Source: Wallemia ichthyophaga EXF-994 (lineage: Eukaryota > Fungi > Basidiomycota). From it: a stretch of DNA of 32,000 nucleotides. The notes beneath the pieces are model-generated. The model was not told the DNA's origin, made no database searches, and worked only from the letters and a program-made list of their open reading frames with translations. The stretch covers positions 262,592-294,591 of the forward strand of contig NW_008806278.1 in NCBI RefSeq assembly GCF_000400465.1, written 5' to 3'. Of the stretch, positions 15,307 through 17,642 are shown in pieces. Within the stretch, counting starts at the first letter, position 1. Every line of letters begins with the position of its first letter. A program made the translations under genes and the position numbers.

Positions 15307-17642
15307 TTACCAACGTCTCATGTTACCACCAGAAAAACTGTTGGCACCGCTGCTGAAACCGCCACCACCGCCTCCGCGGAAACCGCCACGGCCTGATCAT
15401 TCTGTTAGTTTGAAAGGTAGATCAATCACTCCACCAACCTCTACCGCGACCACCGTATCCACCACGGCCACCGCCACCACCGCGGCCACCAAATGAAGCC
15501 TAAAATCGCGTTACTAATAATCGCAACCCTTGCTCCTCTCTATCTTACCATTTCATCTAACTCGGTTGGTACATCTTGCTTAGCTTCACGCAAAATCTTA
15601 ATAAGATCACGAGAATTCTTTGCATTCTCAGTGGTAAAGAAGGTGATAGATGTACCCTTAGTACCAGCTCTACCAGTTCTACCGATTCTGTGAATGTAAT
15701 CTTCAACATTGCTGCTAAAATCGTAGTTGATAACGTATCCGATATCCTTGACATCTGAATTAGTAGAAGGTATAAGTAAGTAACTATTCAAGAGCATCGA
15801 CAACGAAGAAACTTCTACTGCTGCTGCTACATCATAGTAATTTCGAGTAAAAGAGTTAGCACCTTCATACTCGATGAAAGTGCTAATATATCTCGAGGTT
15901 TTATAGGAATCGCACTGCTTACTATAATAATATCAATGTCTTTGCCTTAAACTAACAGTGTAGCGGATGACAGTTGGACTTTGCTTATAGTAAGCACCAG
16001 AAAGGCGGCGTTTAATGTTTAATGTTTACCAAAAACATCAACGCGACCTCTTCTTCAATCAGCCTATCCGCGGATGTGATAGGTCAAAAATAAAGATCTT
16101 TGTCTGATACGATTCTCTGACCTCTCACTCATTCCCTCAAGATGAACAACAACAGAAGCTGCGCTGCAAAGAAAATTAACCTACCTAAACCACGTGATGC
16201 AACGTCAGTAGCAAGCATCTAAATTGTTGATTAGATGAGGTTGAGAGAAGGTGAACTGCTGAACTACTCACAATTGGTGATCTGCCAGACTTAAACTCAG
16301 CTAAAACCCAGTCACGCTCTTGTTGTTGCTTGTCACCGTGAATGGCGAGTGCAGGCCAGCCGTCTTGACGGAGGTACTTCGTGAGATCATCGGCAACACG
16401 CTCTGAGTAATTTAGTCAGACTGAGAAGATTAACAATTAGAATAAACCCACTTGTACCAATGAAAATGAGAACCTTGGCATTTTCTTGTGAGATTTGGTC
16501 AAGGTGTTGGACGAGTCTGCCACGCTTGTCAAATTCACTACAGACTTCGATGATTTGTTTGACATTGTGGTTGGCAGACAACTCCAAAGAACCAATGTTA
16601 ACCTGAATCATGTTGTGCAAGAAATCGTGGGCCAAAGCTTTGACCTCCTTTGGCCATGTAGCTGAAAACATGAGTGTTTGTCTGTCAGGTCTGATTTGAG
16701 AAACGATCTTGCGGATTTGAGGCTCGAAACCCATATCAAGCATACGGTCAGCTTCATCCATGACCAAGTAAGTGACACGCTTGAGGTTGGTTTTGCCCAT
16801 ATCGAGCATATCGATCAAACGACCGGGGGTAGCGATTACGATTTCAGCACCTCTAACTAAATCTCTGATTTGAGGGCCCTTTGGAACACCACCGTAGACA
16901 CAGGTGTTACGGATCCTTGAAGTTTTACCGAACTTTGTGCATTCTTCTTGAATTTGAACAGCAAGCTCACGGGTTGGAGCCAGGATCAAGGCGATTGGAC
17001 CGTCACCAGGAGACAACAAAGGTTGAGCATTGATGTGTACCATGGCAGGCAAAGCGAAAGAGATGGTCTTACCGGAACCAGTTTGGGCGATAGCAACCAT
17101 GTCTCTACCACTTAAAGCCATTGGCCAGGCTTGACATTGAATGGAGGTTGGGGAAGGGAAACCCATTTTGTTAATCTCAGTCAAGATGTAATTAGGGAAA
17201 CCAGCTTCGTCGAAACCGGTGATTGGTCTAGGGACGCCTGTACCAACGATGGACATATCGTGCTTCTTTCTAAAGTCAGCGACTTCTTGCTCGCTGCGAT
17301 CTTGGACTCTTTTATCTTCAACGTAGAAGTTCTTTTCAAACTTGGTTAAGTTGTTGAAGTCTGGCTGTCCGAGGTTACCGAAGCCATCGTCGTAACCACC
17401 ACCACCACCGCCGCCGTAGCCTCTGCCACCACCGCTGCCGTAAGCGGATGAGCCACCTCTGTCTCTACCATAGCCGCCGCCGCCGCCGTAACCACCACCG
17501 CCATAGCTGTCACCACCGCGGGAGTAACCACCACCACCGCGAGAGTAACCACCAGAACCACCATAAGAGTCGTAGCCACCGTTGCTGTAAGACTGAGCCA
17601 CATTAGCGGTTTTATAGGGAGAATTAAATTTTAACCAACCAT
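15307..17642 (-). CDS. DBP2: DEAD-box RNA helicase Dbp2 (p68/DDX5 orthologue)
   Basis: Motifs [36 protein letters not shown] and [10 protein letters not shown], with RGG-rich termini. The first coding exon is only ATG (17642-17640), followed by intron 17593-17639. Further introns include a 430-nt one at RGL|D. Confidence 0.97.
15843..15896 (-). repeat. Hairpin in DBP2 intron (13-bp stem plus outer stem)
   Basis: Sense strand UUAGCACUUUCAU-CGAGU-AUGAAGGUGCUAA (15886-15856) pairs fully with one G-U wobble. An outer UCGAG/CUCGA pairing closes it (15843-47 with 15892-96). Confidence 0.8.
15916..15996 (-). repeat. Perfect 12-bp inverted repeat in DBP2 intron
   Basis: TGCTTACTATAA (15916-15927) is the exact reverse complement of TTATAGTAAGCA (15985-15996), enclosing 57 nt. 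Confidence 0.85.

Follow-up and report, generated by a model that had tools for sequence, protein, structure and literature searches.

In this study, intron 4 of a DBP2/DDX5-type DEAD-box helicase gene was analysed in a 32,000-nucleotide (nt) stretch of Wallemia ichthyophaga EXF-994 (contig NW_008806278.1, positions 262,592 to 294,591, forward strand; the whole stretch is called the window). A preliminary description of this DNA had taken a group of bases in the intron for a candidate poison 5′ splice site beside a local RNA switch. Our analysis suggests, with a probability of about one half, that these bases are part of a conserved folded RNA domain and that the intron is an autoregulatory DBP2 intron with a zipper-type fold that Dbp2 may unwind. 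Their conservation appears to be better explained by predicted long-range folding that would join the ends of the intron than by a poison donor with a local switch. The fold rests on sequence and computation, and its proposed function on homologous and analogous systems.

The gene is located on the minus strand (15307..17642) and, under the splice model, encodes an uninterrupted product of 553 aa with the Pfam domains DEAD and Helicase_C and with glycine/arginine-rich (RGG) tails at the N- and C-terminus. The closest named protein was the p68 RNA helicase of W. mellicola CBS 633.66 (86% identity), and the next matches were DBP2 proteins of other basidiomycetes (70–79% identity). Judged by its sequence, the gene is the DBP2/DDX5/p68 orthologue. 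The exons and intron 4 are placed as follows.

17642-17640, minus strand: exon 1
17592-16452, minus strand: exon 2
16402-16272, minus strand: exon 3
16218-16185, minus strand: exon 4
16184..15755, minus strand: intron 4, 430 nt, GTAGGT...TACTAAT..CAG, phase 1
15754-15549, minus strand: exon 5
15499-15439, minus strand: exon 6
15392-15307, minus strand: exon 7

The six introns measure 47, 49, 53, 430, 49, and 46 nt in order, so that intron 4 with its 430 nt stands against 46–53 nt for the other five; the corresponding lengths in W. mellicola are 428 and 45–47 nt. Intron 4 has its normal donor (GTAGGT after an exonic G) at 16184 and its acceptor at 15755. It interrupts the Asp codon that follows ...ATDVASRGL; helicase motif V lies on one side and motif VI, coded by the following exon, on the other. 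A phase-1 intron splits the same codon in the window, in four Wallemia-like lineages, and in Coprinopsis and Microbotryum. Position and length of the long intron are conserved from yeasts to human (PMC4695336), the position being given in that paper for S. cerevisiae, S. pombe, and human. The position in Coprinopsis and Microbotryum agrees with this statement. By this published account, the site is the one known from yeasts and human, and the identity given to gene and intron in the preliminary description was correct. Intron 4 belongs to a known class, the conserved long autoregulatory-type introns of DBP2/DDX5.

Orthologous introns were obtained by exact-protein look-ups and represented three Wallemia-like lineages: a sister of the window (L022), a W. 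mellicola group containing W. mellicola itself (L001) and the W. mellicola-like Logan contigs L002, L005 (unspliced, apparently genomic), and L023, and an AT-rich outgroup (the L003 group). The window, L022, and the W. mellicola group form six alignable sequences, from which the outgroup stands apart. Intron 4 was 428 nt long in W. mellicola (L001), 432 nt in L022, 554 nt in L003, 538 nt in Coprinopsis, and 1001 nt in Microbotryum. The outgroup protein was 87–89% identical to those of the other Wallemia-like lineages, which were 91–95% identical among themselves; all Wallemia-like DBP2 proteins were 74–78% identical to those of Cryptococcus and Coprinopsis.

Comparison of the window with W. 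mellicola showed fourfold-degenerate sites to be 57% identical and the five short introns to be near random (0.60–0.65 versus 0.53–0.57 after shuffling), while the long intron reached 0.73 versus 0.60±0.01 in shuffles. The long intron was 82% identical to that of L022, whose protein is 97% identical to the window product and whose fourfold sites are 68% identical. Three blocks were distinguished; positions with a plus sign are counted from the first nucleotide of the intron.

16173..16102 (+12..+83), minus strand: block A, 72 nt, 92% identical to W. mellicola
15935..15890 (+250..+295), minus strand: block B, 47 nt, 91% identical to W. mellicola
15833..15815 (+352..+370), minus strand: block C, 89% identical to W. 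mellicola

Within block A lie the zipper's 5′ strand, an in-frame TGA, GTGAGA, and the inner helices' 5′ strands. The block is complementary to blocks B and C; its part +54..+83 (TGAGTGAGAGGTCAGAGAATCGTATCAGAC) was invariant in 6/6 alignable sequences. Small insertions and deletions shift the read-through frame between lineages, and the constraint therefore acts on RNA or DNA and not on a peptide. As these alignments indicate, the stretch flagged in the preliminary description is under strong constraint. The minimum free energy of intron 4 was −122.9 kcal/mol (z = −4.04), lower than in 100/100 shuffles, and the whole-intron z-scores were −3.35 in L022, −5.38 in L003, and −1.67 in L001.

In the predicted fold, the two ends of the intron are paired in a zipper helix consisting of the following strands.

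16136..16167 (+18..+49), minus strand: zipper 5′ strand, GCAGCGCAGCUUCUGUUGUUGUUCAUCUUGAG
15800..15847 (+338..+385), minus strand: zipper 3′ strand, CUCGA...GAUG.AGCAGCAGCAG...CGUUGU

The duplex has 31 bp with bulges (−29.2 kcal/mol), including a 10–11-bp duplex CUGUUGUUGUU/AGCAGCAGCAG, and its core pairs had probabilities of 0.9–1.0 in the thermodynamic ensemble. The 5′ strand begins 17 nt after the 5′ splice site and its 3′ partner strand ends 39 nt before the branch adenosine, giving a linker total of 56 nt in the window; the total is 59 nt in L022 and L001 and about 46 nt in L003, and it is close to the full length of the gene's other introns. In S. cerevisiae, a zipper is defined as a stem of 6 bp or more whose start is 10 nt or more past the 5′ splice site and whose end is 20 nt or more short of the branch point, the linkers totalling 42–85 nt (PMC12350175). 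The geometry of the predicted intron 4 zipper lies within all of these limits.

Folding each intron separately gave the same outer architecture every time. Duplexes between the 33-nt 5′ element and the rest of the intron had energies of −29.2 kcal/mol in the window, −32.1 in L001, −30.3 in L002, and −29.3 in L003, values matched by 3/300, 0/300, 1/300, and 0/300 shuffled targets, respectively. Among all 33-nt duplexes of the intron, the zipper ranked strongest in the window, L001, and L003 and within the top five in L022. The 5′ strand was the sole stretch of the intron with significant similarity across the three lineages (blastn E about 1e-6 versus L003), and the outgroup was recognisably similar to the window only over the first 49 nt of the intron. 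The partner in L003 is a 34-nt GC-richer island at +459..+492 (CUCGAGAUAUGAUUAUACAGCAGUGACCAUUGUG), unalignable yet equally complementary, and a U-to-A change in the 5′ strand of the outgroup is met by a U in this partner. In every lineage, L003 included, the partner is situated just upstream of the branch region. A nearby partner for the 5′ element (+91..+137) was also considered and rejected, being weaker (−19 to −22 kcal/mol) and not conserved.

Two registers of the zipper are possible owing to repeated motifs in the intron (three copies of UGAG and two of CUCGA). The segment AUCUUGAGG (+42..50) has a second possible partner, CCUCGAGAU, in block B at about +287/+293; in the minimum free energy structures, this site is chosen in W. 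mellicola, whereas the choice in the window and L002 falls on the downstream CUCGA at +338. The outermost helix of the zipper is formed by a tract resembling a 3′ splice site (UUUUCUUUGCAG, then CGCAG) at +10..+21 (16164-16175, minus strand), 20–25 nt past the donor, which was kept as (C)AGCGCAG / GCGCGAG in all lineages. This tract is too close to the normal donor to be used with it.

Inside the zipper, a second long-range pairing was predicted, referred to here as the inner closure.

16107..16124, minus strand: inner closure 5′ strands, GAGGU (+61..65) and GAAUCGUAU (+70..78)
15895..15915, minus strand: inner closure 3′ strands, GUGCGAUUC (+270..278), loop CUAUAAA, and ACCUC (+286..290)

GAGGU pairs with ACCUC 225 nt downstream with a probability of 0.80–0.85 and was invariant in 6/6 alignable sequences. 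Pairing of GAAUCGUAU with GUGCGAUUC had a probability of 0.6–0.97, and all its pairs were kept in 6/6, with two positions that are U-A in some lineages and U.G in others. All three lineages have an inner helix in which GAGAGGU forms one strand; this strand overlaps GTGAGA and would account for its conservation without a splice site being needed. In the outgroup, the inner closure consists of GAGAGGU paired with ACUUCUC, followed by an internal loop with UAAA in it and by a second helix whose sequence is wholly different: AGGCAACUUCGA/UCGA..GGUUGCUU in place of the GAAUCGUAU/RURCGAUUC of the other clade.

The remaining elements of the predicted structure are the following.

16063..16083, minus strand: hairpin CCUAUC/GAUAGG, ensemble probability 0.95, 6/6 pairs in six sequences
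16008..16044 (+141..+177), minus strand: hairpin GCGUUGAUGUUU...AAACAUUAAACGC, with a G-C to A-U compensatory change in L022
15916..15996, minus strand: inner domain, 12-bp stem of UGCUUACUAUAA (15996..15985) with UUAUAGUAAGCA (15927..15916)
15857..15885 (+300..328), minus strand: hairpin UAGCACUUUCAU/AUGAAGGUGCUA, between the two CUCGA sites
15759..15781, minus strand: branch region, UACUAAU (15765..15759) with ACUUAC upstream (15781..15776)

In the W. mellicola group, one C-G pair of the CCUAUC/GAUAGG hairpin is replaced by U.G, and the loops of this hairpin have diverged. The hairpin UAGCACUUUCAU/AUGAAGGUGCUA had 12/12 pairs both in the window and in L022, one pair showing a compensatory change (C-G to U-A), and is represented by a shorter hairpin in the W. 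mellicola group; the 12-bp stem of the inner domain kept 10–12/12 pairs in all six sequences. In the RNAalifold consensus of the six sequences, 8/126 pairs were changed on both sides, all in inner hairpins. In an alignment of mini-constructs that included the outgroup, MAFFT misaligned triplet repeats, so that no compensatory pairs were counted. The duplex tests performed lineage by lineage were relied on because of this misalignment and because formal covariation was not significant.

The 3′ arm of the hairpin at 16008..16044 contains a tandem 7-nt repeat (ACATTAA ACATTAA AC) with two UUAAAC overlapping AUUAAA. UACUUAC was present just upstream of the branch region in the window (ACUUAC at +404..+409), in L022 (+401), and in L003 (+516), with UGCUCAC/UACUCAC in its place in the W. 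mellicola group; in the outgroup, UACUUAC may itself be the branch site. ACUUAC is identical to the 5′ end of U1 small nuclear RNA (snRNA) and complementary to the 5′ splice site of intron 4.

Efficient splicing of an intron eight- to ninefold the length of those that this spliceosome usually handles would depend on the fold. When abundant, Dbp2, a helicase that separates strands locally, would open the short G.U-rich helices, and the intron would then be retained. The stop codon 18 codons into the retained intron would leave a transcript without motif VI, degraded or useless, and GTGAGA would be at most a cryptic donor buried by the fold. The long intron of S. cerevisiae DBP2 mediates negative feedback, and its retention is relieved in a helicase-dead mutant (PMC4695336). 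In RPL7B, a zipper stem is a splicing enhancer and the target of autoregulation, its disruption giving feedback (PMC12311795), and in plants an RNA hairpin located in a long intron allows DRH1, the DDX5 orthologue, to gauge how active it is (bioRxiv 10.64898/2026.01.23.701338). The proposed mechanism fits these three cases, namely relief of retention by helicase inactivation, inhibition of a zipper, and self-sensing.

Several observations weigh against this interpretation. The W. mellicola intron was only marginally better folded than shuffles (z = −1.67). In L022, a change of U46 to G produces a G.G mismatch in the zipper, and its duplex with a wider query was not significant (z = −1.17). With the same duplex test, no zipper reached significance in Coprinopsis, and the one detected in Microbotryum was weak and lay elsewhere in the intron. 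Among the alignable sequences, the pairs of the zipper and inner closure are invariant and give no covariation signal either way. Formal covariation was weak, the observed compensatory count being reached by 99/500 shuffles (window and W. mellicola group, three sequences), and covariation across clades depends on a structure-guided (positional), not sequence-guided, correspondence. In the predicted fold, GUAGGU at the 5′ splice site is itself paired with ACUUAC, an arrangement that would inhibit splicing rather than help it. The thirty invariant bases exceed what the helices need, and a bound protein or an alternative conformation probably plays a part as well. In vivo folding, intron retention, and feedback are matters of inference here.

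The reading given in the preliminary description was that GTGAGA at 16128 may be a regulated poison donor and that a local three-way switch, which Dbp2 could remodel, chooses between productive splicing and splicing that leads to nonsense-mediated decay (NMD). It was built on the following strings, each confirmed by direct reading of the sequence.

16128-16123, minus strand: GTGAGA, candidate alternative donor
16123-16118, minus strand: AGGTCA
16086-16081, minus strand: TGACCT
16083-16078, minus strand: CCTATC
16068-16063, minus strand: GATAGG
16049-16045, minus strand: AGGTC

Read-through from 16184 gives 18 codons and then TGA at 16131-16129. The candidate donor lies in GTGAGAGG, within the 30-nt stretch invariant in the window, L022, and the W. 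mellicola group, but is missing in the outgroup, which reads AAUAGAGAGGU and retains the rest of the architecture; its conservation holds for one clade and would be explained there by the GAGAGGU helix strand. Its use would be unproductive in every lineage that has it, the extension of 55–56 nt not being a multiple of 3. A stop immediately before the donor is peculiar to the window, where read-through first meets an in-frame stop at +54. In L022 the first stop falls at +57..59, inside GTGAGA; the W. mellicola group has it at +45..47, which is 9 nt upstream of GTGAGA and in a different frame; and the outgroup has it at +69..71. Donors of this type are plausible, GTAAGA being the donor of DBP2 intron 5 and GTGAGA that of a candidate intron elsewhere in the window, yet GTGAGA at 16128 differs from the U1 consensus at −2, −1, and +6, a poorer match than the normal donor, and lacks the T at position 6 carried by 11/12 DBP2 donors of the window and W. 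mellicola. This comparison covered the 12 DBP2 donors and the U1 consensus; joining of open reading frames over the whole window was too noisy (161 candidates), and GTGAGA occurs 24 times on its two strands. Its bases are mostly paired in the ensemble (unpaired probability 0.00–0.38 per base), so that unwinding would expose the donor, as with the hidden 3′ site of the plant DEAD element.

Of the pairings in the proposed switch, the CCUAUC/GAUAGG hairpin is well supported, as noted above, but the AGGUCA/UGACCU pairing had a probability of 0.03, with a wobble and a terminal mismatch in relatives and no compensatory change, and the UGACCU/AGGUC pairing had a probability of 0.00 and is interrupted by a mismatch within the helix both in L022 and in the W. 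mellicola group. AGGU beside the candidate donor has as its predicted partner not a local sequence but the distant ACCUC (0.85), for which the outgroup has an equivalent. In 42% of dinucleotide shuffles, a hexamer within about 10 nt of the candidate donor had a perfect complement no more than 100 nt downstream, which places the proposed switch pairings at chance level. Moreover, retention of the intron by itself leads to the same premature stop, which makes an extra donor unnecessary. The literature on which the preliminary description drew is sound with regard to negative autoregulation of yeast DBP2 through the long intron (PMC4695336, PMC12458251) and to promotion of NMD of DDX17 mRNA by DDX5 (PMC3763533). 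The preliminary description identified gene and intron correctly and was right that regulation is likely, and its donor-plus-switch mechanism is wrong or at least unsupported; we consider that mechanism very unlikely.

The candidate GTGAGA intron mentioned above is 44 nt long (802-845, plus strand), has GTGAGA after an exonic CAG as its donor, joins frames of 54 and 87 codons, and fits use of GTGAGA donors elsewhere. An ATG overlaps the stop (AATGA, 16129-16132, minus strand) in the window alone, the relatives having ATTGA. If the 16128 donor were used, this ATG would be in frame with exon 5 (MNVKDIGYV...); the overlap looks accidental.

A role for GTGAGA is retained in a two-state version of the folding model, which would make the intron a helicase-gated RNA device that Dbp2 shifts from a zipped, splicing-competent state to an open, retained one. 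Blocks A and B would then be near-invariant because their bases must satisfy two mutually exclusive folds, with AUCUUGAGG pairing with either CCUCGAGAU or CUCGA...GAUG at +338 and ACCUC pairing with either GAGG copy, and the open state would also free GUGAGA as a decoy or poison donor in the window/mellicola clade. If true, fungi would possess an equivalent of the plant DEAD sensor, independently evolved in the same gene and intron, and the model would supply a concrete mechanism for DBP2 autoregulation, but we consider it quite unlikely in this full form.

The conserved blocks might alternatively bind a protein, such as an Mmi1-like YTH factor, cleavage factors, or partners of Dbp2, which would send unspliced transcripts to nuclear decay or polyadenylation, folding being secondary. 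In S. pombe, intron 2 of dbp2 recruits Mmi1 via UNAAAC and lowers dbp2 mRNA, especially at high salt (PMC4695336), and intronic poly(A) sites have been proposed for S. cerevisiae DBP2 (PMC12458251). Perfect invariance over 23–30 nt also suggests sequence-specific recognition, and the window intron has three UNAAAC versus 0.57 expected, as well as two AUUAAA. Two of the three, however, are the UUAAAC copies of the ACATTAA repeat in the hairpin arm, present twice in the window, once in L022, and not in the W. mellicola group; UNAAAC counts are one in the W. mellicola group and zero in the introns of Coprinopsis and Microbotryum. A conserved cluster of UNAAAC or AAUAAA motifs was thus rejected, only one UAAAAC, in the loop of the inner closure, being common to all lineages. 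The mutual complementarity of the blocks, kept with different sequence in the outgroup, is also left unexplained, and this alternative seems unlikely to us. Wallemia species are xerophiles or halophiles, which makes the salt response of S. pombe intriguing.

The fold might instead be a purely constitutive aid to splicing, free of regulatory information, that offsets the length of an intron long for historical reasons. Zipper stems are common in long S. cerevisiae introns (32/88, PMC12350175), the geometry found here fits their definition, and nothing in our analysis shows regulation. Yeast zipper stems, however, are 20–30% conserved (PMC12350175), whereas the strands in the window are near-invariant despite silent-site identities of 57–68%, and yeasts, basidiomycetes, and human have all preserved a long intron at precisely this site, which is regulatory wherever tested. 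We likewise regard a solely constitutive role as unlikely. Another candidate for the conserved element is a separate small RNA, either a small nucleolar RNA or a microRNA-like hairpin, hosted by the intron. Stable hairpins do exist in it, and the homologous human DDX5 intron is said to have been reported by Moore et al. in 2011 to encode a microRNA. Rfam gave no match at E<=1 in the window intron or in the loci L001 and L003, and in window positions 14000-19000 the sole match up to E = 1 was a chance-level isrG outside the intron (15.9 bits versus a gathering score of 100). We saw no conserved C/D or H/ACA boxes, AUGAUGU of the window being UCGAUGC in W. mellicola, and the conservation extends over distant blocks that pair with one another instead of being confined to a single compact unit, which makes a hosted small RNA extremely improbable.

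The folded domain favoured here can be compared with several known systems. The S. cerevisiae DBP2 intron belongs to the same family, has the motif V–VI position as described, and is unusually long for its genome; its retention yields a truncated product and its feedback needs helicase activity (PMC4695336), and its mechanism is "not fully understood" (PMC12458251). Similarity in sequence to the window intron was not seen, no search aimed at it having been made. No zipper or inner closure has been described for it in the literature examined, and DBP2 is unmentioned in the survey PMC12350175. Intron 2 of S. pombe dbp2 is a homologous long intron whose inefficient splicing lowers mRNA (PMC4695336). 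It works via UNAAAC bound by Mmi1, whereas the window intron has few such motifs, mostly unconserved, and its conserved blocks are base-paired. The literature examined describes no conserved structure of the long intron for either Saccharomyces or fission yeast.

In the plant DEAD element (DRH1/RH46), unwinding shifts splicing to forms containing premature termination codons, and the helicase has a C-terminal RGG tail, as does the window protein. That element is a single hairpin of about 20 bp hiding an alternative 3′ splice site and is plant-specific according to its authors. The window intron, by contrast, has a multi-helix long-range fold, and a hidden site, if there is one, would be of the 5′ kind and is not conserved throughout the lineages; a stem-loop of the DEAD type, of about 20 bp over an alternative 3′ site, was not found in the window intron, which also had no Rfam match. 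The zippers of RPS17B and RPL7B are in ribosomal-protein genes regulated through RNA binding by their own protein products, whereas the effector proposed for the window is a helicase; the zipper strands of the window are also far more conserved in sequence than yeast zipper stems (20–30%, PMC12350175). Poison exons and NMD switches of RNA-binding proteins share the logic that an RNA-processing factor limits its own or a paralogue's mRNA via unproductive transcripts, an example being the promotion of NMD of DDX17 mRNA by DDX5 (PMC3763533). They differ in that the window intron is without a demonstrable conserved alternative exon or site, whole-intron retention being sufficient.

The structural core of intron 4 is unusually clear, and no earlier description of it was found in the literature examined. 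DBP2/DDX5 is an essential, dosage-sensitive helicase whose intron feedback has been known since the 1990s, reportedly from 1995 onwards, and a few precisely defined helices provide an experimental handle on its self-control. If the zipper is the target of the helicase, the feedback of yeast DBP2, the zipper autoregulation of RPL7B, and the plant DEAD sensor would be united in one principle of helicase homeostasis. If it is not, the locus is an ordinary though unusually well conserved DBP2 intron.

A practical consequence concerns annotation, several deposited W. mellicola gene models being wrong at the long DBP2 intron (L001:4434-4861). Proteins P0121, P0123, and P0125 (446–448 aa) end in ...SRGLGTFNFLQRRFCCCPS, which is read-through into the intron, and P0122 and P0124 (564–582 aa) contain an invented peptide (VVFMLYSSIMGSDYDIVILLT.LEISSMQQQQQPFR) derived from intron sequence. 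These variants of 446–582 aa were therefore rejected as transcript evidence, being artefacts of annotation (intron read-through and invented exons). At the other end of the gene, exon 1 of the window was modelled as ATG alone, followed by a 47-nt intron (GTTGGT...CTCAG; 17593-17642, minus strand, including the ATG), a model that is unconfirmed; the W. mellicola gene model starts 36 nt farther upstream (MFVDKSSKSTLKM).

A metagenome scan with a pattern of exon 4 plus donor yielded no further relatives. In a metagenome scan with the intron motif TTCTGTTGTNNTNCATCTTGAG, 10 matches (L006-L015) had no adjoining DBP2 exon and were discarded as chance matches. The outgroup loci (L003 and L018-L021) come from European Nucleotide Archive (ENA) metagenome assemblies ERZ28597369, ERZ27248842, and others; the outgroup recurs in at least 17 metagenome or Logan contigs, with a GC content of 28% over the locus and 24% in the intron. 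Upstream of DBP2, the outgroup has a Sey1 gene, and a VPS9 gene is found there in W. mellicola, L002, L022, and L023.

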